Positions 11,101 through 50,699 of a stretch of 64,000 bases of DNA are shown here, in pieces. Every line of letters begins with the position of its first letter. Positions within the stretch are counted from its first letter, which is position 1. A program made the position numbers and the translations under genes. The stretch is from assembly GCA_010909165.1 (NCBI GenBank), contig VJWM01000118.1, forward strand, positions 434,001 through 498,000. The letters run 5' to 3'. Origin of the DNA: Anthoceros angustus (lineage: Eukaryota > Plantae > Anthocerotophyta). The notes below the pieces were generated by a model, which saw only the letters and a program-made list of their open reading frames with translations, ran no database searches and had not been told where the DNA came from.

Positions 11101-12182
11101 TTCATCCCATGGTTATTCCCCCATCCTTACCGGAATCCAATGCATATATAGTGGCTGCTGGGTAATCCGTTTTGCTTCCATTATTTAGGTCTTTTTCTGG
11201 CTCGACGCATGAGAAAAGCCATTTTGAGCCTAAAAAAAACCCTCTTTGGTGTATAATAGGATCAAAGGCCGCTCATGTAAATTCCACCATTTCAAATATT
11301 ATGTTGGTATATATATATTTTTAATTCAAGATAATTTTCTAACATAATTCCCTCGTTCATAACATGCTAACCCATCCTTTTCATTATAACATGCTTTCCA
11401 CTGTTTATCCATTACGATTTAACCCCAAAGCGTTCACGCTCTCAGACAGTTGTGGTCTCACATGGTGAACTAGCGCGAGGAAACCGGCGTGCCCAACAAA
11501 AATAACTACCTACAACCACATATATAGTTCTTTCTTTTTTCCAGATTTCCCCTTTGACGAATAGCAACATAGGTACTCCGGTTTTTTAAAGCTCCATTAA
11601 AATATTCATATTCATATTTTTAAATTATTATTATATTAATTCATACCTACGCTATCAAATAAGTGTATTTGTGAGTAGGCACTACATCAACAGCAAGGAA
11701 AACTGTAGAAGCGACAAAGTTGATGGAAATGTGCGGCAAAGAATCCAGAAACTAAATTATCTAATCACGTCATATATTTTTACATACTCAGTGGCACCGG
11801 ACGATCCTGCGAGGACGCTCGCTATGAGTTTCATGGTGTAGGACCCTCTCTATGAGTTTCATGGTCTAACTAAGTGAACCAGAAGTGTAAGCTGATCAGC
11901 TGATCCGTTGAAGTCTGTGAGTATGATGATCCAACTCCAAGTCTGGAGCGTTACGATTGAGGCCAGCAGAAGCCAAAGAGGTCCATAATGGGGGCAGCTT
12001 TGGTGGACCCAAGAAAGTGGTGGGTTAACTTTGATTGTAGGAAGAGCTCCCGCTGGCCACTGTGTGGGTGTACGAGGCAAATTAAGGAGAATGAACATTT
12101 CTGGATCCGGAAGGTCCTCTGGTTGAACAAGGGCTGCAAGCCAGCTTGGGTGTTTGCGAAGCTTCGAGTCTTAGGTGTGGAG

Positions 12183-24300: not shown

Positions 24301-25371
24301 CTGGTGGAAGCTATAATGAATAGGCATAAAACCGTGGCCGACCTGCTAAGCGAAAACGGTGCTCGCCTTCCCAAACCGGACGTCACGAGGATTCTCACCT
24401 TAGCTGCGACAGACGGAGGGCTGGAGGTGCTGCAGGACTTGCTCTTGCATGGAGCCGATGTCAATGCAACTGACTCAGAAGGGCAAACCGTCCTGCACGT
24501 CTTGGCTGCTCAGACCGTTAGCGCTGATGGAGTTGCTGAGTTTCTTATCATGAATGGAGCTGATGTCTCCAAAACAGATTACAATGGGGTGAGCCCTGTG
24601 GACGTTGCAAGGAAACACGGGAATGACCACCTGCTGAGGATATTCGAAGGAGTACTGGACAAGAGCACACCAACCATGAACGGAGATGCAGTACATTCCA
24701 AGGTGCAGAATGAAGCCGATGCAGAATGGGCTTCCTTAACAGAAAGGAAGAAAGATCAGGTAGTTGCGTTTGCTGGCAGTCAGGCTGACGTTCAATTGAG
24801 TGAAGATCAGTTCACCAAGCACGTCTACACGCCGAGCTTGGCTACACTTATGAGAAGGCGAGCAACAAGAGTGGGAAGCATGGGCGGTGATGCTATAGAC
24901 TCTAGTTTCTTCCTGTCTAGGCAGGCAGAAGGAAGTAGGAGAAGTAAACCAGTACCCCAAACCAGACGGGTTACCGTGTACAGCCATCACCCAAGGAGTA
25001 AGGGAAGCAGAAAGTCAGTGGGCAGGGTGATGTCCTTCCCAAGATCACTCAAGGAGTTGCTACGAATCGCAGGTCAGTCCCCTGTGCTGTCGATACTTTT
25101 GTTTGCTGTTCATGTCTACCCTCCAGTTCTACTTTGGGCCTCACATTCACTGTGTTCCTTCGTTGCAGGCGAGAAAATGAACTACAAACCAACGATAGTG
25201 CTAAGTGAAGACGGCGCAGAGATTGACGACATAGCACTGGTTAGAGACAATGACCATTTGTACCTGGTAGACGAGGAGGGACCGGGTAGCAATAACTCAC
25301 CTCCCAACACCAAGCAGCTGGCGTCCGAAATCTCCCAGCTGGATGGGGCCACGCCTGGCATGATACGTTAG
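21376..25371 (+). CDS. Shaker-type AKT1-like K+ channel (S1-S6, cNMP-binding, ankyrin repeats, KHA domain); 13 exons
   Basis: Exons 21376-21560, 21683-21898, 22010-22168, 22261-22318, 22423-22740, 22847-23086, 23175-23273, 23381-23413, 23540-23725, 23831-24025, 24107-24182, 24281-25072, 25169-25371 splice in frame; [18 protein letters not shown]4, [19 protein letters not shown] pore. Confidence 0.93.
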
Positions 25372-25599: not shown

Positions 25600-26452
25600 T
25601 TCAAAATTGCGGTAGCGATGGGTCCAAGCGATAAACTATCAACGTTAGACGAGGTAGTTGGGTTGCTCCTACAAGAGGAGCTGGAGAAGTCCTTCAAGAC
25701 AGAAGAGAATGAAGACTCAACGCTCTTCTCAAAGAAGGGAACAATATATGGGAAGACTTCACAAGCCAATTCTGGAGAAGGATCGAAAGAGAAAGGTATG
25801 AAGAAAAAGGTGCGGATTACTTGCCATTATTGCAAAAAGCCTAACCACTATGCTAAGGACTGTAGGACAAGGTTGACTGACTTAAAGAAGGGAAAGGAGT
25901 CACAAGCCAATCAAGTGTGTGAGGAGGAAGAACATCTCTTTGCTGTCTCAATTGGTCGTAGAGAGCGTACGAGAGCGCCCATCAAAGAAGGATGAGAGTT
26001 TGTACCTCGAATCTGGAGCATCTCAACATTTCATCTGCTACCGGCCATGGTTCTCAAGCTATGAAGAAATGTCGGCGGGGCATAAGGTGGCGCTTGGAGA
26101 CAATAGGTCACACGAGATCAAAGGAAGAGATGTGATCAAGGTTCAACTCCCTAGAGGACTATCCAAATGTACCAATTAAGGATGTGCACCATGCACCTGG
26201 TCTTGCAAAGAATCTTCTTTCAATAACAAGAATCACTGACCCTGGGAATGAGACTGTGTTCAACTCGAGGGAATGTTGCATCCAATCCGAGCAACCAAAT
26301 CATATAATGTCAAGGTGATAGCTCGAGGTATTCGGAAAGGCTATCTCTATAAGTTGTGTGGTTGTGTAGGTGATCAAGAAGCTTGTACATTTGTGTCAGG
26401 CTCACCTGAAAGCACTGTGTCAGTAGATTTGTGGCATCAACGCTTGGGGCAC
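25600..26452 (+). mobile_element. Truncated Ty1/Copia fragment (gag zinc knuckle, protease, GAG-pre-integrase)
   Basis: CHYCKKPNHYAKDC, LYLESGASQHF, APGLAKNLLSI, DLWHQRLGH; ends abruptly. Confidence 0.85.
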
Positions 26453-28269
26453 ACTGTCCCACTAGAAAGGGAAGCCTATGTTACAGTTGTAGTTGCAATT
26501 TTATGCTACAGTTCCAAATTACAACATGCTTTGGAGGCCTAGTATTAAGTTTTTCATCTCTTTCGCCATATGGTGCCACCATCTTAATTAAATACGAACC
26601 TTACTCTCTCTCCTTCTACCTCATTCATAAATACACCCCCTCTCTCACAACCATTTTTTATTATTTTCCACATGCAATTGCAACATAACTATAACAAGGC
26701 AGGAACCTCGGCTAGACAGATCATCATGCCAGGGACTCACACTCCCCCCTACACCCACCAACTACGTCACATTCACTTCATTCCAACCCACCTCAATTGT
26801 TTCGGGCCTTCCCGTCCGTGCTGGGTGTCTCCGTCATTCCAGAGGGAATGCTGCGATGCCCTCTTCATGGTCCCGGCGCTCCAGGGGCTTGCTCTGACCA
26901 TGAAGTTGGATGCCTGTTGTCCAGCGACTCTGAACTCTTGCTGAGAACTGGAAATCCAACAAATGGGAATACATATTGAAAATTGGAAATCCGGCAATTG
27001 GAAACTCGTGGTCCTCAATGCCACCACGGTATCACCCACGACAGTCCAGTTGGGCTATTGCATTCCAGACGGAATGTCCAGACCATACACATGGGTGTTG
27101 GTCATACCATTTACGGCCGCCAAGCATCCTACCCTCCCCTCCAAACTCATACGTAACATTGGATGATCCAAATCTGCCGCGCCCGCCTCCAAAACCCAAG
27201 TGGGGACTTCCTGTGCCGCTAATGCCACACTACCACCCAAGATGATGAGCAACACCTCATCTCCGCTTGCTCTGCAGTCTCAGCGCAGCGTACCATCCTC
27301 CACCTCAAGATCACCACAATCGTGCACTGACTAGACCTCATGCTTACAATATCGGACAAATTTGCCCGCTTCTTACTCGCCACGGCACCGATCATTTGTG
27401 CTATTGCCTCAACATGCTATTTAGTGAAGGGGGTGATTATTCAGCATGAGGGTTTTCTGCTCTTTATTTGCCGAAGGGGGTTTTGGATGGGTGTTGAATC
27501 CTTTGTTCACCGCTTGTCTTTGGAAAAGATGATCAAAGAAGGGGTGAACACCAACACGGAACCACGACTTGCGTTCGTGACATGTGGAGCAATGGTTGTA
27601 GTTTACACCTATGCCGACTTTAGAGCCCATTTACCCAAAATGGAGCACCATGATCACTGTGAAGATGAGTACATTTGACGATGCCCCCACAAACAATCGG
27701 GAAAACATGGTCCAACCAATGTCGAACTCTCATATTTCAAGTTTCCCCAGAACGCCTTCCACGCGGGTGGTGGTGGTATGGGTCATAGGAATCCTTCATG
27801 CGACATGGAATTCATGGAATGGTGGGTGGCGCCGCCAGCCGCACCGCCTCCCACAATCCCGTAAAGTGATATGTCATCTCCTATCCCTTGGTAGGTTGGA
27901 GGAATCGATTTTTGAGACAAGAGGGTCAGATGTGTGTCACCAACCATCCGAGGATGCTATGTATAGTCATGTGACTAGCCGTGATCAAAAATGAAAGTGC
28001 CGGTATGGATGCATTATTAGTGACCGCATCGTGCAAGCCCTAAATGTGCACATGCTCTAAATGTGCAAATTGCGTGGGAAAAGGGTGTCCCCTGAACTGC
28101 GCTAGTGCTTTAGGACTGAAACCGTCCAGTACTTGGAGTAGTGGAGTTTCCATCGGCTACCATCTTGTAGAATATACAGGTCGTTTCAAACTTTCCCCAA
28201 GGACAGTGGGCTACAATGAACGTATCGAATGTGGCTTGCACGGTTTCCCTTCTCAAAACAGAAAATGAG

Positions 28270-29966
28270 GATACAGCCTATGCGCACTTTTAACATTCGA
28301 AGTGCAATCTACTCTCCTTCTAAATTGACGTCATCTTCGTAGGTTCGCATCATCACCGCCATCTTCACTATCCTCTGCCACTTTGACTTGCTGGTTGTAT
28401 GAAGCCCGCAATTCATTCATTCTTGTCCTTGATTGCCTTCTTGTCTACCGTGACAGATGTTTCCGAGAATTCAAGGTGAAACCATAATACAAGATGACGG
28501 TTTTGTGTACATAAACTTCTGAATATTTTTAGGTTCAACCCTTCGACCCCTTTTCCCGGTTTTGTTGCTTGGCTGCCCGGCATCCCCAATTATGTATTCT
28601 TCAACGTACCTACCCTCAAACGCATCTGTGTGCTCGCCTGCATAGTGAACAAGTAAGTGAGGTGGGTCATCAAACAAACAAATCAATCACCTTCCCAATC
28701 CAAAATGGTCTCACAGCGTGTCCTCGCTTGGAACCGCAATGAACATGCCCTTATTTATTTCAACACATCACCATTCAAACGTGTCATTCCCTCCTTGTCT
28801 TTCCAAGTTTTGGTATCGTCCCAAATACATATCTCGTTGTGGAAGGTCCTCAACAACGCCTCGTAATAAAGCTTCATCATCAAGTCGCAGAGGTTGGGCT
28901 GTTACTTCTACTTGGACCTCGAATACCACTTCCAAGGATCTTTGGAGGGAGGCCCAATGTTGTTTTGAACAATAACAAGAATCTCTTGTTGGTCCACCCG
29001 AGCTTCCCACCATTTGTATTCCTCCGATGTCACATAAGGCCTAAGGGCCGAAAGACCTTCCTTCAAATGAGCCACACCATCCGTAGGTGATAAGTCCGCC
29101 AACTTTCCTTTTCTATCCCTTGACCGAGGGCGGTTAAGGGAGCCGCCATATTGTGTCCAACAGCACGAATGTCAAAACTCCAACCCGGCCTCGCCTCCCA
29201 ATAGGCTGATGTGGAATCTTGCTCGATGATTACAAACCCACGGTCACCTTTGGCTTCTCTCGTAATTTTGAATTGGTGCCGGAAAGAGAGGTTGTTTAAT
29301 TTTTGACCGCCTTGTATGCGTGTCCACCTTCCCTTGCCTTATGGGCCAAACATATGACCGGAAGTCCGAACTTCACCAATATCTTCACCTCCGTGGAGTG
29401 TACGCACTAATCAAAATCTCGGTGCGGGAAGAGTGTGAGCTTCCTTGTGTTTTAAGCTTTTGAAAAGCATGAAAACATTTGGTCGATTTGATCATGCGTA
29501 TGCCCCACCAACAAAACCCCACTTTCACCTTTTCAAACGTCCCCATGTCCACGAGCATGTTGAGATATGCAAAGCAGTTGATTCTTGTTCTCTCTGCAGT
29601 GTTGTCCAATTGCAAATATAACACTTTCGGCAATACTCCTTCGTAGTTATGAATAACATCCTCGGATGATGGTAATCGTAAGATTGGCATCATTCCAAGT
29701 TCGCATAATGCAAGTAAGCTCTTGCCTTAAACGTGTAATTGTGGATCATGCACCCAACCACATGAACTCAATACGGCACTCCTCATCCAAGTTCTTTGGC
29801 CATCGAAGTAGATGGGGAATCTCCGTCTTCTTTTGGTCCATTCCATCGATTGAAAGTAGAAGGTACATATGTGGTTCTACATAACTCTTGCTCCTGTGTT
29901 TCGCCATCTTCAGCCGCTCCTGATGTAACCGCAAACGATGGGCATCTAAAGCCGCTTGATATTTTT
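28270..29966 (-). pseudogene. DDE/D transposase, catalytic 3' half (DUF7869-type)
   Basis: LLSIDGMDQKKT, LYLQLDNT..ENKN, LLVGHTHDQIDQMFS in frameshifted frames; splice acceptor at 29967. Confidence 0.75.
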
Positions 29967-30100
29967 CTGTTTCAGAAAACATACACACTCGTCAGGTACA
30001 TTTGAAGAGACATCCAGTTAGATATGAAGGACCCTCCTATGCTGGGACAGTACACTGCCTGGGCGACGTCCCGCCCCAAATCAACGGAGGAATAGCCTTC

Positions 30101-32462
30101 TGTGGAGTGCCAAACTGTCCGTACTCGCGACTTGTCTTAGGCTTGTTTTGTTTTGGGTCAGCATCATAAGAGGGATAGGGAGGAGTTAGCCAATAAGGCG
30201 AGCGGCTGCATTGCACTAGTGTGCAATCCTAGACCTAGGTCCGTCGGCGAGGTCCACGGAGTGGTCCGTCCGGCGAGGTCCGACGGAGGGTCCGTCGGCG
30301 AGGTCGACGGAGGGTCTGCCCGGCGAGGTCCGACGGAGTGGTCTGTCCGGCGAGGTCACGGAGTGGTCTGCCCGGCGAGGTCCGACGGAGGGTCTGCCCG
30401 CGAGGTCCGACGGAGTGGTCTGCCCGGCGAGGTCTCGACGGAGTGGTCTGCCCGGCGAGGTCCGACGGAGTGGTCTGCCCGGCGGTCCGGCGGAGTGGTC
30501 CATCCGGCGGTCCGACGGAGGGTCGTCCGGGCGAGGTCTGGAGGGGTGGTCTGCCCGGCGAGGTCTCGACGGAGTGGTCTGCCCGGGCGAGGTCCGATGG
30601 AGTGGTCTGCCTTGAGAGGTCCGCGGAGTGGTTCGCCGGGTGGTTTAGTTTGGTGGGCATCGCTGGCATGGATCTCGCTTGGGGAAGCGGTGCAAGAAGT
30701 CCGGCAGTTGATGAGCTACGCCCCGTTACCACGACCTGTGGTTAGGGTACATACATAGTGTGATTATGATACATACATAGGCGGGTTAGGTTATGGGAGT
30801 ATAGGAAGGCTCAAGGCCCAAGACGGCACTATCCTAGGTACCATCTTCAAGGCGCTCCGTGTGTTTGCCTTCGTGCTCGAGGAGCGAAGTGAGTTCCACA
30901 CGCAGTGATTAATTGGTGGTAGAGGGATGTGTTTAGAGCTCGTGACGAGCCCGCCAACAGCTTGATGGGTGCAGACGGGACGGACCCGAGCTGGAGGTGC
31001 TCGCGGGTGATTTCTCGTAGACTAACCTTGGAGGTCACTGAACGGAGGTGGAGTTGGTGTCGCGAAGTCACTTCTCCGTAACGTGAAGCGGTCGGAGGGG
31101 ATTAGGAGGCGTTGGGGTGACTGGGCGGAAGCCACCCTTGGAGGCTGAACGGAGGCTGTGGAGTTGCAGGCTGCGAAGCCACTTCTCTGCAGAACGTGAA
31201 GCGGTCGGAGGGGATTAGGAGGCGCTTGGGGGTGACCTGCTGGGCGGAAGCCATCCTTGGAGGCTGCTGGAACGGAGGCTGTGGGGTTGCAGGCTGCAAA
31301 GCTACTTCTCCATGAGCGTAAGGAAGGGCAAAGGCGACACGGTGTGAATACAACGGCGTGTTGGTGTTGTGACTACCGCTGGTGATGGACAAGAGAGGAG
31401 GGTCGCGTTGCGGCGTGTGTGTTGAGGTGGAGTTGTGGCCGGACAGAGTTGAGGAGCGCTGGGGCGCTAGAGTACGTAGACTGATGGAGGAACGCGTCGC
31501 TAAACCTGTTCCGGTGGTACTGGAGAAACCCGGGGTTTGTGGGAAGGTCCGGTGGCTGCGCGTCTGGTCCGACGAGTTGTGGAGGGGCACACCCTTAGGG
31601 TTGTGGAGCCGCCGGACCCAACATGATGAAGTCCGTTCAGGCGATAGGCTGTAGAGCTCGTGACGAGCCCGCCAACAGCTTGATGGGTGCGAGACTAACC
31701 TTGGAGGCTGAACGGAGGCTGTGGAGGTGCTCGCGGGTGATTTCTCGTAGACTAACCTTGGAGGTCACTGAACGGAGGTGGAGTTGTGCGAAGTCACTTC
31801 TCTTAACGTGAAGCGGTCGGAGGGGATTAGGAGGCGTTGGGGTGACTGTCATGGAAGCCACCCTTGGAGGCTGAACGGAGGTGGAGTTGTGCGAAGTCAC
31901 TTCTCTAACGTGAAGCGGTGGAGGGGATTAGGAGGCGCTTGGGGTGACTGGGCGGAAGCCATCCTTGAGGTCACTGAACGGAGGTCGGGGTTGCAGTGCA
32001 AAGCTACTTCTCCATGAGCGTGAAGCACCGGAAGGGCAAAGGCGACCGGTGTGAATACAACGGCGTGTTGGTGTTGTGACTACCACCGGTGATGGACAAG
32101 AGAGGAGGGTCGCGTTGGCGCGGTGTGGAGGTGGAGTTGTACAGAGTTGAGGAGCGTTGGGGCGCTAGAGCACGAGATCGATGGAGGAACGCGTCGCTAA
32201 ACCTGTTCCGGTGGTACTGGAGAAACCCGGGCGGGGTTTGTGGGAAGGTCTGGTGGCTGTGCGTCTGGTCCGACGAGTTGTGGAGGGGCACACCCTTAGG
32301 GTTGTGGAGCCGCCGGACCCAACATGATGAAGTCCGTTCAGGCGATAGGTTGTAGAGCTCAGGCAGAATAAGCACGAGACCATTCCCTTGGGAACGGACT
32401 CCTTACTACAACGACACGGGATTGTGCGCGCCCGGCTGGCCGTCAGCGAAAGTCGCGCCACA
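30101..32462 (+). mobile_element. Solo LTR, family A, with an internal ~700-bp duplication
   Basis: TGTGGAGTGCC...GTCGCGCCACA termini; same sequence inverted at 38316-39870 and 40257-41768. Confidence 0.85.
30240..30640. repeat. GC-rich ~28-bp tandem array inside LTR A (also ~39480-39730 and ~41330-41620)
   Basis: Unit CCGGACGGACCACTCCGTCGGACCTCGC, clearest at 41521-41604. Confidence 0.9.
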
Positions 32463-35110
32463 CCTGTTAACACCTTCTCGGTGGCGCTTATTAGTATTTG
32501 CTGGCCACACTCTCCAACTGGTATTCCCTGAAAAGATTTCCAGGGCTTGGCCAACATGTCTCTAGGCTTGACGTACACACTATCAACCTGCTTGGGCCTA
32601 ACTTGCGCTTGCCTTTCCCTTTCTTGCTTGTCCCCGCAGGAATGTGTTTCTTCTGTTCTGGAAGCTCTCCTGCTTCCCATTTGGAAAAAAGCTTGTCAAC
32701 ATTCTCCCACACCTTCCCATCCTGCTTAGCAATACACAAAATGTGGGTCCGATTGTCCACTTTGTTCGCTTGTACACGTCGTCCTCCGCCCTTCATCGTC
32801 TTCAATCAAACCTAGGACTTTATGCAGTTGTATTTCAGGACATGGTCATTTGCACTTCTTCCTCTTTGCGATGATCAACTCGTCCCTTAAATACGACTTG
32901 CTCTATAAAGTTCATCTTCTTTCTTGATCGGACATCATATTGTGATCTGTTGCAAGCACCGCATCTCATGCAGTAAGCCCACAATACACATGTGCTTCAA
33001 CATATTGGAACCGCTTCTTCCGGGTGAGATATCCGATAAGTGCTTCATAGCTGCGTGGGTGTGGTTACCACCAAGAACTCCCATGACATACTTCTTTGCA
33101 CGCCATTGCTTCCGATCCGACTTGCTCTATAAAGTTCATCTTCTTTCTTCGGGACATCATATTGTGATCTTGCACCCGCATCTCATGCAGAAGCCCACAA
33201 TACACATGTGCTTCAACATATTGGAACCGCTTCTTCCGGGTGAGATATCGATAAGTGCTTCATAGCTGCGAGGTGTGGTTACCACCAAGAACTCCCATGA
33301 CATACTTCTTTGCACGCCATTGCTTCGTCCGCCTTGCTCGATCAAGACACTCGCTCGGATCAATCATACACAAAAGAGGCAGAACTCCCTCCTCTATCCG
33401 CCCTTTCGCTATAACACGGGCAAGATAGTTTGCCCAAGCCTCATCAACCCTCCGGATCTGCGGGTAATGTCTTGCCGGTCTCAAGTTCTCCAACTTCACT
33501 AACCTTTCTGCACCACCTTCTTGAGTATGCGAATCCCTTAAGCGAGTCAATGGATCGCATCCCTCATAGCCTCTTCCAACCTTTCCTCGTCGGTTTGAAT
33601 ATGAGCGTGGTTATGTCCCCTCCATGGCATCTTCTCTTCCACCCTTCTTTGCCTTCTTGGTTTTCCTTCCCAATTCTCCGTCCTCACTGTGTGTGCGTCG
33701 ACTTCCCTTGCCCTTGCGCCACTTTTCTGATCGTTTGGGCATGAAGGTTGAGGAGGGCGCCGGCCGCGCCCCTCTTCGGCCTCCATACCCACATCCCCGC
33801 ATCCGCCATGTCCTTTTCTCCGGGGACGAACTGCCGACCCGGTGCCATCTTGCTCTCTTTTTACTGTGTGGTGGGAGGATTCGTGGGGCCGGCCGGCGCC
33901 CAAACCACCTGCACCTTCTTGAATCTTATAAACCGGTCCGGATGGCGTTGGGCTCTTGGGAACTGAAGATGACTAGGCGCCGGCGGCGCCTTGCCGCATC
34001 CGGGTCATATTGCATGGTGGGAACCATAACGGAAGGAGTCGGAGTTTGAAGATTGGGAAGGTCCTCGGCATCTGTCCGATTCACATGCCCCGGATCCTTG
34101 ACGCAGATGCTTGAGGTAAAGCCCATCTTCCTCGTCGATGGGCCAAGCTCACTCTCCTCATGATCTTCTTCCACCACATCACCAGTTCTGCAGGAGGCTT
34201 GGGCTCGACGCATAGACATTTCCCTCTTGTGGGCCCTCATAGTTTGTGTAATCTTTTCGCAGATAGCTCGTATGAGTGCCCTCGCAACTAGTGGTGCACG
34301 GAAGATGGTAGGAAAAACATATCCACAATGTCGTGACTCTCACATGTGAAGAAGCTGCGAAGGAATGCGATTCAGGCAATACTTACGCCTCTGTCGCATG
34401 GAATCGCGGAAATCTTCAACAAGGCCACGAGGTGCACACTTCTTCCAGTGAAACCCTTTCGAGGCTAAGAACAAGAGACTTGTATAAACGCGGATCCTGG
34501 GAAACTTCCTCATACTGGTATGCCTTTGTGGTGCACAAAAAAGTGAACTCGCTCCCCTTCATTGAAGTCCAAAGTAGCCCAAACAACCCAGCCCGCTCTT
34601 GCTCTCTGATTTGGCAGAGCCCCCCTATATCCCATGATCCACAACTTCAACAAAGGGGTCCATGGCGCATTGCGGTCAGTAGGTGGTATGGATCCTGCAC
34701 AAGCATCCAGTCCTTCTCCACAACCACAACATTGTCGAGCTGCCCGGATACACGCTGATATGGGCTCCTCATAGTATAAGGTATGAATCGGATGGAATAG
34801 GTTGTTTCGCGCTCTTACCAACCTTCTTCGTCCCTTGCTCTCCAAAGAACCTTTGTGGGATTTGGCGGATGATCGCTGCCCGATTTTGCTTGCCCTCAAG
34901 AATGCTGCCCCTCCGTTGGAGCATGGCGGATGGCAAGATGTCTCCAACCGGCGACTGGATGGAGGTGCCTCGCGATGTCCGCCGTGGGCGCGGGTCTGCT
35001 CTCGCCTTTGAGCTTCCTCGGCCTTCTTGGCCACGCATGGCGGGTGTCATATTCCTCCAAAGGCTGGTCCTTCTTGCTCCTCCGCTTGCCATCTTGATCT
35101 CTGCAATTCA
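32463..35110 (-). pseudogene. 5' half of cargo gene: ParB/Srx-like domain plus helical linker
   Basis: QIRRVDEAWANYLARVIAKG...YVMGVLGGNHTHAAMKHL, then VYCGLT..DA.LATDHNMMS...MNFIEQV; 224-bp internal duplication. Confidence 0.6.
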
Positions 35111-35948
35111 AGGCAACCCCACTCCGTAATCACAAAGAGATGCACAAACGGTGACCGCTAACTCACTCCAAGATCGCCTCTCAAGAGCTTGGCGCTGCCG
35201 GCTTGCGAGCTTGCGCTGTCACGGCAAAGTTGCGCTCAACGAGCTTGCGGCGGTCTAGGGCGGGCAGAGCGCTGCGGTGTGGCGCCTCACTCCCGGCATG
35301 CGGCGATCACGGTGGTGGTGCGCTCGGCAGCAACGGTCCGCGGTGTTGCGCTCGAAATCGGACGTGAACTGTATTGCCTTGCAAACGGTAGCCCTTAAGT
35401 TCAGAAAAGAGGAGGCCTTAACGAGAACTGAAGCTAAGCGACGTGTAAAAGTAGGGTTTTCTTCCATAACCCCAAATGGTTTTCATAACCGTGTTTCTCT
35501 AAAATAACCCGCTACCTTAAACTCAATTTTGACCAGAGCTTACTATTTTAGACTGTCGGCCCGCCGCCATCAACTTTTCCGCCAGGTGGCTGCTGCAATT
35601 ATGCTTGGATTTTCCGTTACAATCCTGTGCACAGCCCGCCGTCAACCACTTCATTGTCCGCACTTATTTCGAGGCAATCCCATCAACCTCTTAGGCGGGG
35701 GCACTCAGGGGATGCGAGGGCCGTCCCGACGCCATATAGCAAAGCTCCGGGAGGGAGGCTTCTGATATCTGCTAGCCACTACCTGGTGCTCTGCAAAGTC
35801 TTGTGCTTTCCTTCCTTGCGCATTGCGATAAGTGCGTGCGATGTTGCATTTGACGCACACGCCTGCGGGAGATGAGGTTGGTCTTGTTTCGCCATTGTCT
35901 TTTCCCTGCATACCATTCATGATACAGTATGCAACTTGTGCAACGACC

Positions 35949-37202
35949 ATGCCTGTGGCGCAGGAGGTTCAAGTGGAGGACCCGGGCCCCTCGCAATTCC
36001 AAAGAAATGGAGACATGGTCCGCAGTAGGAAGAGGCTCGCTATCTTGAACGCTCCTCCAAGTTCACATATTCCGGTGCAATACCCACGGAGTCCTCCACA
36101 TGAAGGTTTGTTGTGGTTACCAGCTTTTCCCACTTTTGGAAGAGGCAGTCAGGTAGCTTGTTAAGTCTGTGTTCGCACCGCCCATGTAGGCTCTACAACG
36201 AGGCGTCGACACTTGGCGTCACCAAATATGCCGCGGGGTGTGCCTCACACCGGAATTTGCATCTATACGCAGCCATTGAGGGGAGCCCATCTACACGCCT
36301 CCCAGAGCCGAATTCGAGAGTTCTCATCCCTCAACTGCGTGAGAATGGACCACCTGTTGCACGCAGGGGATTGTTTGATGGTGGTCACGGTAGAAGACCT
36401 CCCACTGGGCAGGAGCACGAACCCTCCGAGGATGAAGATGAAGCTGACCACTTCCAGACACCTGCACCGCGTCAGTCGTTCCATCCCAAGCCGCTGGGTG
36501 AGACGCTGACTGCGTCAAGCGAGCAAAGCATTGCACCTCAACGGAGACGCACAGTTGGTGTCACATTGAAGAAAAGTGAAGGAGAGGTAGTGACGGCGGA
36601 TTTCCGAAAACCATGTTGCAATCAAATGTGCTTGCAGAAGCTGACAAAAGAAAAGTTTCAGGAGCAGAGGTACCGATTCCTAAGGATGGGCAGGCCAGAG
36701 CAAGAGACATTTCTAGAGTCCTTGGTTCAAGCGGAGAGAGGGGGATGTGAAAGGGGTAAAGTATGCACACACATTTTGGGGTCCATTCCGATGCGCTGCT
36801 GCTTGAAGGCATTTAGAAGAGTATATTGCATAGGGCTGAGATATGAGGAATCAAGAGCGAATCATTTGAATGCCCGTGGATGGTTTCAGCCTAACCCCAA
36901 ACCACGCCTTCTTATGCGTTGGGAGCTATATCCGGATGGATAAGACATTTCTAATGATGGCGGCGGTGCCGACGTGGAGGTCTTCAACCTTCCGACATAC
37001 ACAAGGTTGGAAATATGGAGTATGTACAGCGGCAATGCGAAACCTCCGGGATCCTCTATGTGAAAATATCCATGGTTCTTGAAGTTATGGAAAAGCAACT
37101 TCCCAAGAGTGAAAATACCGAAATCCAACAGGTTTTCCACGTGCTCACTCTGCGCAAGTCTGAAGAGCACAATTAGGAACACAGTCCACAAGTCCGATCA
37201 AG
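35949..37202 (+). pseudogene. 5' half of the same transposase
   Basis: KPCCNQMCLQK, RCCLKAF, FLKLWKSNFPRVKIPKSNRFSTCSLC; phase-1 donor at 37203 joins the acceptor at 29967 (KSDQ-E-KYQAALDAH). Confidence 0.7.
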
Positions 37203-37329
37203 GTAATTGTTACCACTTTCGACGGGGCTGGTTGACATGCATGGGAACTTATGACAATGGTTTTCTTGAGTGGGGAATGGTTGTTTTGAACTCGAGGCTT
37301 TATGGGCAAGATCCCTACAACCAGGTATT

Positions 37330-38315
37330 ACTGATCTTTGTATGATGGGATGGGGTGCGACGCCAGCCGACCGTCGTCCCACATATGCAAAACCCTTGGG
37401 ATGAAACCCTGAGAGGCCAGCTGTACATGTGGTGGGACGCCGGCCGGCCGGCCCCAGTGGAGGCCAAGAACCCTATGGTGCCCGTTAAAGAGCCCCTGGA
37501 GATGGGGCGCCGGCCGGCCGGCGCCCCACCTCCAGGTGCTCTTTAACGGGCACCATAGGGTTCCGTCGGCTGAGGGATACCAACTGGCCAACGCCCCACA
37601 TGGCGAAGGACCATACGGGTCACCCTACAATTTATATGGAGGCGGCCGCCTACGCCTCCATAACCAAAAGCCGATGGCATGGATTGTGGTTGCTCGAGTA
37701 CGGCCAACGCGACAATTGTCTCGCAAATGCGCTAGGACGGAACATGAAGGTGTGGCGCGACTTTCGGCCGACGGCCACCAAGCATAATCCCGTGTCGTTG
37801 TAGTAAGGAGTCCGTTCCCAAGGGAATGGTCTCGTGCTTATTCTGCCGGAGCTCTACAACCTATCGCTCGAACGGACTTCATCATGTTGGGTCCGGGCGG
37901 CTCCACAACCCTAAGGGTGTGCCCTCCACAACTCGTCCGACTGCACAGCCACCGACCGTCGTCCACATATGCAAAACCCTTGGGATGAAACCCTGAGAGG
38001 CCAGCTGTACATGTGGTGGGACGCCGGCCGGCCGGCCCCCCTGGAGGCCAAGAACCCTATGGTGCGTTAAAGAGCACCGGAGATGGGCGCCGGCCGGCGC
38101 CCACCTCAGTGCTTTAACGGGCACCATAGGGTTCCGCTTACCGAGGATACCAATCGCCAACGCCCCACATGGCGAAGGACCATACGGGTCACCCTACAAT
38201 TTATACATGTGGGCCGGCCGGCGCCCATAACCAAAAGCCGATGGCATGGATTGTGGTTGCTCGAGTACGGCCAACGACAATTGTCTCGCAAATGCGCTAG
38301 GACGGAACATGAAGG
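37330..38315. repeat. Adjacent ~570-630 bp duplication including a partial LTR A end (37751-~37950)
   Basis: GAAGG|TGTGGCGCG junction at both 37746-37751 and 38311-38316. Confidence 0.8.
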
Positions 38316-41300
38316 TGTGGCGCGACTTTCGACGGCCGGCCAAGACAATCCTGTCGTTGTAGTAAGGAGTCCGCTCAAGGGAATGGTCTCGTGCTTATTC
38401 TCACGGAGCTCTACAACCTATCGAACGGACTTCATCATGTTGGGTCCGGCTCCACAACCCTAAGGTGTGCCCTCCACAACTCGTCCGACTGCAACCACCG
38501 ACCTTCCCACAAACCCCGCCTGTTTCTCCAAGACCACCGAACAGTTTAGCGACGCTCCTCGCACCACGTGCTCTAGCGCCCAACGCCTCAACTCGTCTCC
38601 CACAACTCCACCTCAACACACGCAACGCGACCTCCTCTCTTGTCCATCACCACCGGTAGTCACAACACCAACACGCTGTATTCACACCAGTCGCTTTTGC
38701 CCCTTCCGCCGCTTCACGCTCATGGAGAAGTAGCTTTGCACTGCAACCCCATGCTCCAGGCCTCCAAGGATGGCTTCCGCCCAGCAGTCACCCCAAGCGC
38801 CTCCTAATCCCTCCGACCGCCACGCTCAGAGAAGTGGCTTCAGCCCCGCAACCTCCGCTCCAGCCTCCAAGGATGGCTTCCGCCCACAGTCACCCCAAGC
38901 GCCTCCTAATCCCTCCTACCGCTTCACGCTCAGAAGTGGCTTCACTGCAACTCCACCTCCGCTCCAGCCTCCAAGGATGGCTTCCGCCCAGCAGTCACCC
39001 CAAGCGCCTAATCCCTCCGACCGCCACGCTCAGAGAAGTGACTTCAGCCTGCAACTCCACCTCCGCTCCAGCCTCCAAGGTTAGTCTCGCACCCGAGAAA
39101 TCACCGCGAGCACCTCCCGAGCTCAGTCCGCCCCCCTGCACTCCATCAAGCTGCGGAGCTCGCCACCGAGCTCTAAACACATCCTCTACCACCAATTAAT
39201 CCCGCACGGTGACGCAGAACTCACTCCGCCTCGAGCACGAAGGCAAGAGCACACGAGCCAAGATGGTACCCGGATAGTCCGCCTTGACGCCAGCCTTCCT
39301 ATATACTCCCATACCCTAACCTAACCCGCCTATGTATGTATCCTAACCGCTATGTATGTACCCTAACTGGTCGTGGTAACCGCCGGACGTAGCTCATCAC
39401 CGCTACCGACTTCTTGCACCACCGCTTCCGCCAAACAAGAGATCCATGCCAGCGATGCCCACCAAACTAAACCACCCGCCGACCACTCCGCCGACCTCTC
39501 AAGGACGGACCACTCCATCGACCGCCGACGGACCACTGCCGGACCGCCCGACGGACGACCACCTGGCCGGACCTCGCCACCACACCCGCCGGACCGCCCG
39601 ACGGACCACTCCGCCGGACCGCCCGGACGGACCACCTGCCTGACCGCCCGGACGGACCACCCGCCGACCTCGCCGACGGACCACCCGCCTGACCGCCCGG
39701 ACGGACCACTCCGCCGGACGGACCTAGGGTCTAGGGATTGCACACCAGTGCAATCCGCCAAAATGGCCTTATTGGCTAACCTCCCTATCCCTCTTAACAA
39801 GAACGACCCAAAACAAAACAAGCCTAAGACAAGTCGCCAGAGTACTGGACATCGGATTTGGCACTCCACATACCCCTTCTCATCATTGGCGGCCTCGCCA
39901 ACACCCCTGGCAATACTCCGCTTCTTCCGCTGACTTCTCGCCTTTTACTACCTCCTCGTGTGCAAGTCCAAAGAACATTGGGAACCTTTACCAAGAGTTC
40001 ATCCTCCGCTGAGGATGAGTCGCCTCCTCCTCCGAGGTTGATGTGCCGCCCTCCCGCCTGTGCCCATCTTCTTTCTCCTTGAGCATGCCGGGCCTCCCGC
40101 TAGATTCGCACCTCAAGGTCCGGCCTGCATCCTCCCTACTTCTATATACTCCACAAACCGCCCGACCATTACACCCATCCACAACCGCAACTGGCATCCT
40201 ACTCCTACCTACTAACTCGTGCAGCCACAACAATACTATTCCCAAGAACGCCAAAATGTGGCGCGATTTTGCGACGGCCCGGCCAAGACAATCCGTGTCG
40301 TTGTAGTAAGGAGTCCGCTCCCGGAACGTGCTTATTCTCGAGCTCTACAACCTATCGCCCGAACGGACTTCATCATGTTGGGTCCGGCTCTCCACAACCC
40401 TAAGTGTGTGCCCTCCACAACTCGCCCACTGCAGTACCCACCGGACCTTCCCACAAACCCCTTTTCTCCAAGACTACCGAACAGTTTAACGACGCTGCCT
40501 CCATCGCCCACGCAGCGCCCAACGCCTCCTCAACTCTCCGCCACAACTCCACCTCAACACACACGCCGAACGCGACCCTCCTCTCTTGTCCATCACCACC
40601 GTAGTCACAACACCAACACGCTGTATTCACACCAGCCGCTTTTGCCCTTCCTACCGCTTCACGCTCATGGAGAAGTAGCTTTGCACAGAACCCCACAGCC
40701 TCCGCTCCAGCCTCCAAGGATGGCTTCACAGTCACCCCAAGCGCCTCTAATCCCTCCTACCGCCACGCTCAGAGAAGTGGCTTCGCACTGCAACTCCCAC
40801 CTCCGCTCCAAAGCAGCCTCCAAGGATGGCTTCCGCCCAGCAGTCACCCCAAGCGCCCTAATCCCTCCGACCGCTTCACGCTCAGAGAAGTGACTTCGCA
40901 CTGCAACCCCACAGCCTCCGCTCCAGCCTCCAAGGTTAGTCTCGCACCCGAGAAATCACCCGCGAGCACCTCCCGAGCTCAGTCCGCCCCGGCCGCACTC
41001 CATCAAGCGTTGGCGGAGCTCCACCGTAGCTCTAAACACATCCTCTACCACCAATTAATCCCGCACGGTGACGCAGAACTCACTCCGCCTCGAGCACGAA
41101 GGCAAGAGCACACGGAGCGCCAAGATGGTACCCGGATAGTCCGCCTTGACGCCAGCCTTCCTATATACTCCCATACCCCAACCTAACCCGCCTATGTATG
41201 TATCCTAACCGCTATGTATGTACCCTAACTGGGTAAATCACGGACGTAGCTCATCACGCCGACTTCTTGCACCACCGCTTCCGCCAAACAAGAGATCCAT

Positions 41301-41768
41301 GCCAGCGATGCCCACCAAACTAAACCACCCGCCGACCACTCCGGACCTCTCAAGGACGACCACCCATCGGACCTCGCCGGACCACCACTCCGGACCGCCC
41401 GGACGGACCACCTGGCCGACCTCGCCCGGACGGACCACTCCGTGACCGCCGGATGGACCACCTGCCGGACCGCCCGGACGGACCACCCGTCGACCGCCTG
41501 ACGGACCACTCCGACCTCGCCCGGACGGACCACTCCGTCGGACCTCGCCCGGACGGACCACTCCGTCGGACCTCGCCCGGACGGACCACTCCGTCGGACC
41601 TCGCCCGGACGGACCTAGGGTCTAGGGATTGCACACTAGTGCAATTTGGCCAAAACCGCCTTATTGGCTAACTCCTCCCTATCCCTCTTAACAGTAACGA
41701 CCCAAAAAAAACAAAACAAGCCTAAGACAAGTCGCCAGGAGTACGGACATCGGATTTGGCACTCCACA
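38316..41768 (-). mobile_element. Non-autonomous LTR element, family A: two ~1.5-kb LTRs around a 386-bp non-coding core
   Basis: 5' LTR 41768-40257, PBS-like TGGCGTTCTTGGG, PPT GATGAGAAGGGG, 3' LTR 39870-38316. Confidence 0.85.
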
Positions 41769-43290
41769 ACAGGGCTGATAGATCTGAAGGGGATGGAGGA
41801 AGAGATCACACTGCGGAAAAAATTTCATATCATACAAGTAGCAATGGTGAAGCATCTCGGCTGCTCGTCATTTGAAGAGGTGCGCGAGGAGTATCCTTTA
41901 CATTCTACGGACAATATGCTAGCTCGATTCCAACAAATTCTCCTAAAGGTATGTCCGCATCGTTTTTTTTTCGTCATATTGAACAGGACCGGGATCGATG
42001 CTGTGGCGCCGGCCGGCCGCGCCCGCACCGCCTGCCCCTCGTGATATGTTTCATGACAAGTTGGTGGTCCGCCTCACTCATATATGAGTTTAGAGCCGCC
42101 AGCCGCGCCTTCAATCCAACGCGAAATGAGGGCGCCGGCCGGCCGCCTCTCCCAGAATGACTACGTAGCGTCGCAGCAATTGAAAGACATCAAGTGCCGA
42201 TAAAACTCCCAAATGACTTCCAAAGATTTTATTTTCGAGATAAACAATTGGAAAGGGCTTGAAGACGAGCACAAGCGGACAAGGACCGGAGGAAGGTCTT
42301 GAGGTTTTCAAGGCCCATCAACAGAGCCACAATACCAAATCGAAAGTCGTGATGTACAAGATATGCGTGGTTTTCTGTGGCAAGACACACTTCTCGTCAT
42401 GGATGTGCCCCGAGGTTTTAACATTGGACCTATGGACAAGAGGGTGGATAAGCAAATGATGGATTCTGCCTTCCAAAGCTTTCCGAGAAGACCACTAGCG
42501 ATGAACCGAGGATGATTGTGATGCATGGAGTGGAGGAGGCACAGTTAGAGAATCAATGCGAAAGTGGAGCAGAGGGGCTTGGTGTCGTCGTATGGGACAA
42601 GACAAACATGAACAATGACAGGGTGGATTTGAGACTGTGGAATACATAACTATCGGATGGGGTCCAAGGATGGGAGCACAAAGGATAGAATGCAATGCTA
42701 CCAAATGCTATGCATGGAACATTCAACAATGGAAGGTCCGCTATTGCTCATACACGCTTGTCAAAAACAGTTTACATGTCACATGACAAGTTGGTGGTCC
42801 GCCTACCAGAGACCACTAGGGTTGATGACGAGACTTATTACAACCTTCTCCAAAGAGGGAGATTGGGTTCGGATGCATGCTCGGGAGCGGCACAATCAGA
42901 CTATTGGCGCGCATTATGAAGGAGTTGTATCGCCATCGAGGCCGACTTGAGATGTGCAGTTATATTTCACAAAGAATTCATGGATTTGAGGTGCTCCTGC
43001 ATGCGCTTGAGGAGTTGAATTTTGAAGCCCACCGAGAGGACTTGCACGCCTGGGCAAAGGAGGTTTGCATCAGCGAGAAGGACTCCTTGAAAGCACAAGT
43101 GGTTTCTTTGAGTGCCCGCTGAATAAGAGCAGATCGGCGATTTGTTGGAGGCTGGCCAACAAACACTCGAGAATGTTTGGCATCGTGATGGTAATGATGA
43201 AGACATGATGGGAACGAGGACTCGAGGGCTTTGGTTGAAGTCGACACTTTCGATGAGGAAGAACTTGAGCGGATACGGAACTTGGCGTAG
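41769..43290 (+). pseudogene. 3' half of cargo gene: beta-class amino DNA methyltransferase (N6_N4_Mtase family)
   Basis: LLVMDVPRG (motif IV position, 42402), VVWDKTN, ETVEYITIGW, QRPLGLMTRLITTFSKEGDWV(L)DAC(S)GSGT (motif I region, two 1-bp deletions), RSCIAIEAD (motif II). Confidence 0.75.
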
Positions 43291-44857
43291 TTTATGATTC
43301 GTGTCAAGCACCGTTGAGTCACAAGTTAGCCCCGACGTAGACGCTTGTAGTTGTGAACTATTGTCTGCTAGTGGTCAATTTTTGGCGAACCTAAACAGGA
43401 TGGTCTCCAACCGGCTTGCGCATGCAGTACCCATACCTAGTTTTGTTGTGTTATTACTAGGCCTTTTGTCAATGTGGAAATGGATCATCGCACAAAACAA
43501 ACTACTTGAGGACTAACGGCGCCAGCCGCCTTGACCCTTCCTTCGGTTTTGTTGTTTCACAAGCGATTCAAATTTAGGAATCATTGTCCATGGTATGGGA
43601 CACCCCGAAATCCAAAAAAACACGGTTTTGGGAACCATGTGTTTTCTGTGAAGGAGGTTTCGTTCAACCAGAAGGGGGTTCGGATATTCACCCCCTTCAC
43701 TGAATACCATGTTCCTCGCCTCCGATCATTTGCGCCACCGCCTTGCCTCCGAATCCACCACTGCTGGTTCGAGGGGAGCACAACTCCAACAGCCGAGATG
43801 CCAACTTCACCGATACGGACGGTGCCACCTTCTTCTTGGCTTCTCCTCCCCTCGTTCTCTCTTGCCCCTCTTGAATTACTCTCTCCTCTCCTTTCGTCCT
43901 CTCTCTCCATAGTTTTCTTTTCTTTCCTTATATCGCTTTCAATAGCTTTTGCCGAGATATTTCTCAAATCACCCTAGGAAAAGCCCAGTACAGACTGGGT
44001 CAGTCCCCGCCGCTAGGGGCGCGTCGGTTTCCCCATGTGCGAGACCACGAGACGCGAGACCTTCCTTTCTCACGTCACTCCCCATCACTCTCTTGCTATG
44101 CTATTGCTGGATCTATTGCATTGGCCACATCCTGGTGCACTAGAATCGCCATGCCGTGCCCAGTTTATCAAGTTTGAGCTTGGAGCAAGCCATCATAGCG
44201 ACGGCGGCCACGAATTTGTCTGGGCTCAAATGCTGCACATTTCATCTCTGCTAGGTTTCTGATTGAGCTTGGATATCATGAAGCTACCTCAAACTTCTAG
44301 TGGACCCTCAAGGCAGCTGAAGCTAATGAGCAGCTTGTTTCTTTGCATGTGCACCATGGTCATGGCACCTGTCTTTCAAATCGAGCTCTTGGGATTGTCC
44401 TGAATCATTTGCGCACTCTCGAATCACAAACTACGATACGTTATGTCAGCAGGGTCCTCGAAGCTTTCTGAGTCTCTTGCGCAAACATACATTGGTATTT
44501 CTCTGTTTCAGTTCTTCACCCATGCTAAAATTGTGTGCAACTAAGAAGGATGTCATTATGAGGGCGATGAGTGCATGACCTTGAGCTCACTATGTTGTGC
44601 ATGTGTGCATCTCGAGTTGTAGGTTACAGAAGGCCATGTATGCTAAGGAGTCCATATGGTACTTGATGATAGTAGGTAGTAAGGTGAGAAATAGGTCCAA
44701 CATTTTAGCGTGCAGGACTTGCAGTATCATTTCTTATAATATGCTGATGGGTTTTTTTGATGGTTTGCTGAAGAAGCTGAGGTTTTGCAAGACCGTGAGG
44801 TACAAAGTGATGTTACCGGTGCTACCAAATTGCTAGCGTGTGAGGGTAATGTGTAAC

Positions 44858-45045
44858 TGTTTGGTGAAGTTAGAGAAGGTGATGGGCAACATTTTCCAAG
44901 CTCTGTTTAGTGACATTAAAGAAGGTGATGGGTAGCATTTTCCAAGCTCTGTTTAGTGACATTAGAGAAAGTGATGGGTAGTATTTTCCAAGAGCCAGTA
45001 ATATGTAGCTATTTAGTGACATTACAGAGGGTGATGGGCAATATG
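44858..45045. repeat. 46-bp tandem repeat x3 plus a degenerate fourth unit
   Basis: TGTTT(A/G)GTGA...TTTTCCAAGCTC at 44858, 44904, 44950. Confidence 0.9.
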
Positions 45046-50100: not shown

Positions 50101-50285
50101 CACACCGGCCCGTGGCGGCGATCATGGTAGTTAGACGCAAACTGATGAATGTGCGTTGAGTCCGAACGGGACGCAAAGTGAGGTGAGAATCGTCTGAACG
50201 CGGTAAACGGAGCCCATCATTCCCTTGGGAACGGACTCCTTACTACAACGACACGGATTGTGCGCTCTGCCGTCGGTTCGAAAGT
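47170..50285 (+). mobile_element. gag-only LTR element (family B) with a duplicated 3' end
   Basis: Direct repeats ~47170-47629, ~49300-49735, ~49860-50285; PBS-like TGGCGCTGCCGGGAA after the first; retrotransposon gag ORF ~47873-48824 plus zinc-knuckle remnants; no RT or integrase. Confidence 0.7.
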
Positions 50286-50699
50286 CGCTACCCCTCTCGC
50301 TCTCCTGCCACGCCTCTGATCCGAACGATTCTCCCCCAAAACCTCCACCTCACTTTCGCTGCCTGCGGTTTCTTCGCGTCTTCCCATGGGCGTCGCGCGT
50401 CTATGGCCTCTATGCCTGTTGTCTCACTCCTCATCGCTGGACAGCCACACCGTGCACTCCTCCCTCCATGTTCTAGCCTCCGCTTCACTCATCTCCTCAA
50501 GCACCACTTGCGGGGGGTAGGCCCCAGCTCCCGTTCGAAGGAACCCTTGGTAAAGTGGCGATCAAGATGTGCAGCGGTGGTTCCCGGCCCTCAGCCGTCC
50601 AACCACACATTTAGAGTGAGCACCGCTCACCATGCGGTGAGGCTAGGGACATGAGCATCCTCATCCGACCAGACTACAATACGCCTCCTGCTATGAGGT

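Follow-up and report, generated by a model that had tools for sequence, protein, structure and literature searches.

Does a land-plant genome carry a DNA transposon equipped with a gene for a DNA-modifying enzyme? The question is raised by a 64-kb stretch of nuclear DNA from the land plant Anthoceros angustus (contig VJWM01000118.1, positions 434,001 to 498,000; hereafter the window, to whose numbering all coordinates refer). Here an initial annotation had described a transposon between 32-bp inverted repeats that, once an internal inversion is undone, carries one gene for a transposase and another for a ParB-like protein fused to an amino-methyltransferase (MTase). We find that the interval in question, 16,303 bp at 27411-43713, is probably an old, non-functional and internally inverted copy of a Sola1 element with divergent genes for a transposase and for an accessory protein of the ParB-MTase type.

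Terminal repeats and transposase of the element

Both ends of the element have the form expected of the Sola1 superfamily, namely terminal inverted repeats (TIRs) that start with AAC and are unique in the window, and a 4-bp target-site duplication (TSD). The TIRs lie where they had been annotated, their 32-bp arms differing at 4 of 32 positions (Table 1), and a 19-nt core of the repeat has only two sites in the 64 kb, both of them in the TIRs, against 0.01 expected. The TSD is the CCTC that directly adjoins each TIR on its outer side; it stems from a single insertion, and at fixed boundaries such a match would arise by chance in about 1 of 256 cases. A further short sequence, CCGATCATTTGYGC, occurs just twice in the window, once in each flank (27388-27401 and 43722-43735), 6 and 4 bp past the TSD copies. 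Going by this pair, the insertion site appears to be a short local repeat.

The superfamily assignment comes from the transposase. The annotated motifs of a DUF7869/Sola-like DDE transposase are in place on the - strand (IDGMD at 29850, QLDN at 29612, ENKN at 29592 and VGHTHDQID at 29508), and the Pfam family DUF7869 was matched twice above its cut-off, by 29388-29726 (35.9 bits, profile positions 50-100) and by 29455-29532 (30.9 bits, profile positions 97-116). These matches are consecutive but in two different frames, so a frameshift lies near 29505-29517. As a reference we used the curated Sola1-1_Ec32 transposase of Ectocarpus, printed in the supplement of PMC12477816, short segments of which were compared by BLASTP with pieces of the window. 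Its segment MMVGHTHIQIDQIFSCFAKA was identical to LLVGHTHDQIDQMFSCFSKA of the window at 15 of 20 positions (over VGHTHDQIDQMFSCFSKA; 38.9 bits, E 1e-11), the VQVDNTVAENKN region gave a match at E 0.001, and YFNRIWAQEFPHLKLKPTGDFMLCKICTLLKSTIFGT matched 37064-37342 on the + strand with 14 of 37 positions identical (33.9 bits, E 7e-9). Because the curated transposase is matched directly, and DUF7869 as well, the element is a Sola1 transposon, and its enzyme can be classed from the sequence as a Sola1 transposase. Together with the TIRs and the TSD, these matches bear out the annotated land-plant DNA transposon with TIRs at its ends.

Homologues were sought by word-indexed searches with the N-terminal open reading frame (ORF) of the transposase and with the DDE piece, and none turned up; the N-terminal ORF, 279 aa long, had no significant match of its own. 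The copy has no intact transposase frame that would make it autonomous: the gene is split by the inversion, and at least three frame changes follow, at about 29505-29517, as a compensating pair at about 29590-29610, and at about 29726-29749.

Members of the Sola1-1_Ec32 family carry, on the strand opposite the transposase, a gene for a 1104-aa protein with a ParB-like domain and a DNA MTase of the N4-methylcytosine (4mC)/N6-methyladenine (6mA) type (Genome Biol 2025, PMC12477816). Sola1-1_Ec32 itself has AACCG termini, a 4-bp TSD and 282-bp TIRs, measures 21.5 kb, and has 'Sola1-1_PPa' as its best hit (PMC12477816). The element described here resembles it in the nearly identical blocks DNT.AENKN and MVGHTH.QIDQ.FSCF.KA, in its 4-bp TSD and AAC termini, in its giant size (16.3 kb here vs 21.5 kb) and in an opposite-strand second gene with putative ParB-like and MTase parts, the accessory genes being compared by layout and domain description. 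It differs from the brown-algal element in its land-plant host, its 32-bp rather than 282-bp TIRs, and its inverted, dead state. We take the PPa of Sola1-1_PPa to be the Repbase code for Physcomitrella patens; if so, Sola1 has already been catalogued in a moss.

Inversion of the central segment

The two halves of the transposase gene lie on opposite strands: the + strand encodes LKSTI at about 37170, and IDGMD is encoded by the - strand at 29850. In Ectocarpus a single chain contains both LKSTI and MMDG, the first catalytic-aspartate motif, at a distance of 57 residues. A canonical splice donor, CAAG/GTAATT, is present at 37202/37203 (+), and an acceptor, ttttctgaaacag, at 29967/29966 (-). Donor and acceptor are in the same phase, and the joined exons form an uninterrupted 119-aa frame that matches Sola1-1_Ec32 in one 99-aa alignment across the junction (39.3 bits, E 9e-10); here the spacing is 53 residues, compared with 57 in Ectocarpus. 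Because this phase-compatible join yields an open frame collinear with Sola1-1_Ec32, the transposase halves were once one gene. The donor and acceptor flank the left of two repeat blocks, so the break lies in an intron that contains this block, and since the gene halves beside the blocks stand on opposite strands, yet their join restores the collinearity, the central 5.3 kb are inverted. The data support the proposed internal inversion that splits both genes.

The present order could also be read with no inversion at all, as a native ParB-like/DDE gene on the - strand and, on the + strand, a native gene of the cysteine-rich N-terminal ORF and the MTase, the two being symmetric about a bidirectional promoter. 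The assembly itself presents the genes in this order, with the two repeat blocks placed symmetrically, and the 279-aa ORF has no significant match of its own. However, one Sola1 transposase is matched in adjoining stretches by 37064-37202 (+) and by the exon that begins at 29966 (-), the GT/AG join leaves one open frame with nearly the Ectocarpus spacing, and the published ParB-MTase is a single protein encoded on the strand opposite the transposase. We consider a native order scarcely credible, and the rejoined transposase brings it close to refutation.

A single GC-rich unit (X) makes up both blocks that bound the inverted segment, 30101-32465 and 37748-41768, which are inverted relative to each other and 76-89% identical; blastn aligned 30340-31663 with 41615-40336 at 80.5% and 31756-32465 with 38976-38313 at 82%. 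Unit X is composed of tandem repeats of 25-28 nt and of about 104 nt, and Rfam and tRNA searches returned no family or tRNA that accounts for them. Inverted repeats of 2.4-4 kb at this identity are a classic cause of both mis-joins and flip-flop recombination, and in principle the assembly may have been misjoined between the blocks, or the observed orientation may be one of two isomers that interconvert through them, rather than a fixed inversion. Against this, the arms have diverged (about 80% identity) and hold unequal copy numbers, which makes long-read mis-assembly and ongoing recombination less likely. An artefact or an interconverting isomer therefore seems unlikely to us, and we retain an inversion within the element itself.

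In the present arrangement, the ParB-like exon (-) and the transposase 5' exons (+) of the central segment diverge from 35.1-36.1 kb; the MTase (+) and the transposase 3' exons (-) are directed outward, toward one TIR each. The ancestral element would have held two divergently transcribed, intron-containing genes, one of them that of the Sola1 DDE transposase, which would bind the TIRs and insert the element with a 4-bp duplication. A block of GC-rich tandem repeats, 2.4-4 kb long, would have stood at or near the dividing intron of each gene, the two blocks being in inverted orientation. In the transposase gene the block does lie within the dividing intron; in the accessory gene we infer a position at or near it. 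Recombination between the inverted blocks would then have flipped the central 5.3 kb, so that each 5' half now faces the wrong 3' half, and frameshifts, stops and a tandem duplication would have built up after the flip.

Several smaller features of the repeats were also seen. The 25-28-nt unit is GGACC-rich and non-palindromic and forms arrays of 9-15 copies at 30238-30639, 39504-39719 and 41342-41615, with 103-123-nt arrays alongside. Three further copies of a motif of about 80 bp from the inner end of the repeat block (GGGAACGGACTCCTTACTACAACGACACGGG) lie beyond the element, in GC-rich sequence at 47554-47630, 49669-49735 and 50218-50288, so at least the inner end of the block belongs to a dispersed genomic repeat. 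A GC-rich palindrome, GGCGCCGGCCGGCC, was found in 12 copies with at most one mismatch, against 0.02 expected, all of them inside the element. Copies in 33887-42144 are located at 33887, 37436-37525, 38020-38101, 38212, 42005 and 42131, and a near-perfect palindrome of 96 nt (37468-37563) has one copy at its centre. These copies could be small foldback insertions or, speculatively, candidate binding sites for the ParB-like domain.

The methyltransferase remnant and the putative ParB-like exon

The accessory gene had been annotated as encoding a beta-class N6A/N4C MTase. To score this part we used a hidden Markov model (HMM) of 68 beta-class enzymes from viral contigs related to E. coli YhdJ, all 13 of the 13 checked belonging to PF01555. 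Among six-frame pieces of the window and a reversed decoy, the best match was 42633-42947 (+; 12.7 bits, E 0.021), and the runner-up was a decoy at 5 bits. A purpose-written frameshift-aware local aligner, whose background rose when its jump penalties were lenient, gave this region 31.0, compared with a mean of 16.8 for 164 decoy tiles (standard deviation 2.2, maximum 25.2) and at most 21.7 for the other real tiles. The C-terminal half has a z of about 6.5 over the decoy tiles on this score. When its three frames were joined with X (QRPLGLMTRLITTFSKEGDWV x GCMLGSGTIRLLA x RALxRSCIAIEADL), the HMM score was 26.1 bits; 200 shuffles reached at most 3.4.

The matched segment comprises the S-adenosylmethionine-binding block, with motif X (QxP..L..LI), motif I (GD.V.D.F.GSGT) and motifs II/III (LGR..IGIE). 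Within 190 nt, its frame shifts near 42870 and 42909, and it contains an in-frame TGA at 42917-42919, which falls where the beta-class family has the G of LGR. These data give statistical support to the identification of 42807-42990, from its sequence, as a remnant of a beta-class N6_N4-type amino-MTase. The C-terminal half of the annotated enzyme is upheld in this way; a Pfam match of a single piece and the catalytic motif IV are not. No single stop-free piece reached PF01555 in Pfam even at E 10, Pfam and PHROGs held no convincing match for the stop-free cargo pieces, and PDB sequences and phage tblastn yielded nothing usable for them either. When single bacterial methylases were compared with the window by tblastn, only noise resulted. 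The string DVPRG, which had been read as the catalytic DPPY, scored negatively against motif IV.

The surroundings of the remnant hold further details. At 41656 the string 'PPYWLTPPY' was also matched; it falls within the repeat block and was dismissed as chance. The 23-nt sequence CATGACAAGTTGGTGGTCCGCCT is directly repeated without mismatch at 42052-42074 and 42782-42804, 730 bp apart; its second copy stands directly upstream of MTase motif X, its first within a stretch of about 140 bp between two GGCGCCGGCCGGCC motifs, and the repeat may be filler DNA copied during repair. Between the right block and the MTase remnant, an open stretch ending in ARFQQILLK (41931-41950) meets a canonical donor, AAAG/GTATGT (41948/41949), and is possibly a linker exon of the accessory gene.

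The ParB-like part has a different kind of evidence. The annotated motifs of a ParB/Srx-like core are present on the - strand as GVLGGNHT(H)AAMKHL and VEAHVYCGLT..DAVLATDHN, both of them doubled by a tandem duplication of 244 bp (32891-33134 vs 33115-33346, 91%). At the level of motifs, there is a likeness between these strings and two elements of ParB/Srx domains, the GxxRxxA box and the strand-helix that comes after it. The segment GVLGGNHTHAAMKHL scored 15.9 bits against the ParB box ygVaaGgrRlaALdlL, which is not above background, with T in place of the usual R; the second string follows the GGNHT box in another frame, where a strand-helix ending in a conserved N was sought. The motifs were recovered as annotated, and profile recognition of any kind was not. 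A single-sequence AlphaFold2 model of the 116-aa exon had a mean pLDDT of 50, too poor for a structure search, and a 25-aa metagenome match of the exon in a bacterial membrane protein was set aside as chance. Natural ParB-methylase fusions were sought as a basis for a better ParB model, but ParBc was found in none of 13 phage or prophage methylases checked, in no flank of 80 viral loci and in neither of two further phage loci. Of the possible readings we hold 'ParB-like' to be the likeliest, chiefly on the strength of the published Sola1 accessory protein, whose partner domain is of exactly this type; with the motif resemblance, this precedent makes a ParB/Srx-like domain plausible.

Several observations weigh against combining these parts into a ParB-MTase gene of a Sola1 family. 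For the ParB region, Pfam, PHROGs, PDB sequences and phage tblastn gave nothing, and a search of 1.84 billion representative proteins with the exon returned only a low-complexity repeat protein and no homologue. In a custom ParB N-terminal HMM the region fell below decoys, with only the GGNHT box scoring; this HMM was narrow, having been built from 79 plasmid and integrative-conjugative-element proteins with an effective sequence number of 1.25, and a homologue search seeded with the F-plasmid ParB N-terminus gave close relatives only. For the MTase, no positive match to the motif IV positions of the HMM (22-40) was obtained within 41800-42540 (best -1.3 bits), a stretch that also contains no [DNS]PP[YFW] string, and the candidate N-terminal-half segment at 42536-42646, upstream of the C-terminal half on the same strand, is marginal (HMM positions 88-124, 17.8 bits, equalled by 3.3% of decoy tiles). 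The ParB-like and MTase parts are set apart by the inversion and 4 kb of repeats, and their presence in one transcript would be assumed from the Ectocarpus precedent. To these points are added the possible assembly error discussed above, and the fact that one copy of the element is the sole basis for the co-occurrence of transposase and cargo within the family.

Part of this evidence would fit an ordinary Sola1 element whose second 'gene' is filler, the MTase and ParB likenesses having arisen by chance in decayed, repeat-rich DNA: Pfam is blank for all cargo pieces, the ParB exon lacks a homologue in the representative proteins, motif IV was not detected and the ParB HMM did not rise above background. 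We think this very unlikely, however, because the C-terminal half of the MTase is the best region of the window and tops every decoy by a wide z, its three consecutive motifs stand in the right order within 190 nt with a joined score far above all shuffles, and the same cargo is documented on the Ectocarpus Sola1. If the MTase remnant is real, it could still be a host or foreign piece caught by this one copy, through Pack-type capture or a nested insertion, and not an accessory shared by the family. Such an origin would suit the single copy seen, the 4 kb of repeats between the cargo 3' part and the ParB-like part, and the local rearrangement to which the exact 23-nt repeat (42052, 42782) and the GC-rich palindromes point. 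Yet the MTase lies inside the TIRs in the orientation expected with the inversion undone, and in position, strand and partner domain it matches the accessory gene of the Ectocarpus Sola1, so we regard capture as highly improbable and a family-type accessory gene as the better reading.

As in Ectocarpus, the accessory gene is found inside the Sola1 element on the strand opposite the transposase. Its decay is extensive: the ParB exon is duplicated and frameshifted, the MTase has two frameshifts and a stop, and the inversion separates the halves of both genes. With inversion, frameshifts, stops and duplications in both genes, the copy is dead, and neither protein can be made from it. The giant Ectocarpus elements likewise have nested repeats and frequent pseudogenisation (PMC12477816).

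Table 1. Coordinates of the element's features in the window.
Feature	Position	Strand	Details and basis
Left target-site duplication, CCTC	27407-27410		Directly outside left TIR; read from sequence
Left terminal inverted repeat, 32 bp	27411-27442	+	Begins AACATG; 28/32 identical to reverse complement of 43682-43713
Possible further transposase remainder	Downstream of 29388, toward ~28470	-	Candidate
Sola1 transposase 3' (catalytic) exons	29388-29966	-	IDGMD, QLDNTAE/NKN, VGHTHDQIDQMFSCFSKA; DUF7869, BLASTP to Sola1-1_Ec32
Left inverted repeat block (X-left)	30101-32465		GC-rich; 25-nt and 103-123-nt tandem repeats; internal 0.7-kb duplication
Central unique segment, 5,282 bp	32466-37747		Inverted relative to element ends; divergent 5' parts of both genes
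Putative ParB-like exon region of accessory gene	32838-33610	-	GVLGGNHT.AAMKHL ... VEAHVYCGLT..DAVLATDHN; frameshifts, stops
Sola1 transposase 5' exons	36104-37202	+	279-aa N-terminal ORF and FPRVKIPKSNRFSTCSLCASLKSTI exon; ends at donor CAAG/GTAATT
Transposase N-terminal ORF, 279 aa, cysteine-rich	36104-36940	+	Open reading frame
Transposase exon with FPRVKIPKSNRFSTCSLCASLKSTI	37064-37202	+	BLASTP of 37064-37342 to Sola1-1_Ec32
Right inverted repeat block (X-right)	37748-41768		About two tandem X units (38313-39870, 40257-41768) and partial copy 37748-37967
Possible MTase N-terminal-half segment (GLGVVVWDKTNMNN)	42536-42646	+	Marginal custom-HMM match
MTase C-terminal half, motifs X, I, II-III	42807-42990	+	QRPLGLMTRLITTFSKEGDWV / GCMLGSGTIRLLA / RAL*RSCIAIEADL; three frames
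Right terminal inverted repeat, 32 bp	43682-43713	-	Pairs with 27411-27442
Right target-site duplication, CCTC	43714-43717		Directly outside right TIR; read from sequence

Relatives, possible function and genomic setting

The initial annotation had cautioned that related eukaryotic ParB-MTase fusions might already be published, and this is the case for Ectocarpus (PMC12477816) and, in related form, for red and green algae (bioRxiv 10.1101/2025.02.11.637652). The architecture of a Sola1 element with an opposite-strand ParB-MTase gene was published for Ectocarpus in 2025, and what is new is the land-plant member, not the system. In the literature searched we found no land-plant case of a ParB-MTase on Sola1 or another transposon, and a survey of adenine methylases in eukaryotes, from 2015, contains no example on a land-plant transposon (PMC4738411).

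In the Bostrychia genome, Plavaka, Zisupton, Mutator and Fanzor-encoding elements carry one gene that joins PF01555 to SET and another that joins a ParB-like domain to a 2OG oxygenase (Petroll et al. 2025, bioRxiv 10.1101/2025.02.11.637652), and accessory genes related to them occur on transposons of red and green algae (same source). Like the red-algal PAG2/PAG3 systems, the present element has tandem or inverted repeat arrays adjoining the ParB-like gene, and most of the red-algal copies are degenerate too. The methylase-SET and the ParB-like-2OG oxygenase are, however, two genes on EnSpm/Plavaka and other superfamilies, whereas here the ParB-like and MTase parts appear to share one gene on a Sola1 element. 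The 25-28-nt arrays of the present copy also recall the repeat arrays beside the ParB-like accessory genes of red-algal Plavaka elements.

The same combination of domains is known from prokaryotic and phage ParB-MTase fusions (ParB-Tls loci; Iyer et al., Bioessays 2015, PMC4738411), which share the beta-class block QxP..L..LI..GD.V.D.F.GSGT..A..LGR..IGIE, and from which the present gene differs in its introns and its eukaryotic transposon setting; at the sequence level, the cargo pieces matched no phage or plasmid protein. The Marchantia MpDN4MT1a/b and bdelloid N4CMT enzymes are likewise of the beta-class N6_N4 type and of bacterial ancestry, working, or in the present case once working, in a eukaryotic nucleus. 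They are encoded by single-copy host genes, with intact TSPPY-type motifs and demonstrated 4mC activity (PMC8885841), unlike the transposon pseudogene described here, in which motif IV is not recognisable. Nothing we found relates the cargo to Marchantia DN4MT1, and the suggestion that such elements were a vehicle for DN4MT1-type amino-MTases entering land plants finds no support. Basidiomycete KDZ/Plavaka transposons, according to the account of Iyer et al. 2014 given in bioRxiv 10.1101/2025.02.11.637652, carry TET/JBP genes; they too are a cut-and-paste family with a DNA-modification enzyme as cargo, but belong to another transposase superfamily and use another chemistry, the oxidation of 5-methylcytosine (5mC).

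Transposon-borne ParB-MTase genes have been recognised only recently, in algae, and the proposal is that they enable a transposon to bind its own DNA and mark it epigenetically. Judging from this literature, intact members of the present family may encode an accessory protein that binds the element's own DNA and adds an amino-methyl mark. Right in outline, the annotation went too far on function and on the ParB domain. The annotated writing of a non-5mC mark finds no support in this copy, a pseudogene in which catalytic motif IV was not detected and nothing indicates the modified base. A broader proposal is that a land-plant Sola1 lineage is active now or was so recently, that its ParB-MTase self-marks with 6mA/4mC to modulate silencing or transposition, and that it was a possible route of beta-class amino-MTases into streptophytes; we rate this as quite unlikely. 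Were such self-marking to occur, candidate binding sites within the element would be the GGCGCCGGCCGGCC palindromes or the 25-28-nt arrays, both confined to it. The remnant extends the known host range of the ParB-MTase module to embryophytes, and since neither protein is encodable, the copy serves as a signpost only. Intact ParB-MTase copies may exist in Sola1 families of bryophytes, lycophytes and ferns, and if there are intact copies that are also expressed, they would offer a tractable plant system for transposon-written non-5mC DNA marks.

The remainder of the window contains several genes. At 11988-15281 (+) lies an intact gene for a PPR protein of the PLS class, 1098 aa long, with an E motif at its C-terminus; a DYW domain was not detected in it, and it is likely an organellar RNA-editing factor. 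A long exon at 24208-25368 (+) encodes ankyrin repeats and a KHA domain, the tail of a Shaker/AKT-type K+ channel, and an ORF for a papain-family cysteine protease spans 55646-56884 (+). These three genes mark the window as nuclear DNA from a land plant. Just upstream of the element, ORFs at 25919-26542 (+) resemble, read by eye, Ty1/copia gag-integrase pieces (SGASQHF, LWHQRLGH); if they are Ty1/copia, the Sola1 copy sits in or beside an older retrotransposon. Just outside the right end of the element, a 46-nt unit is repeated in three tandem copies at 44857-44994.

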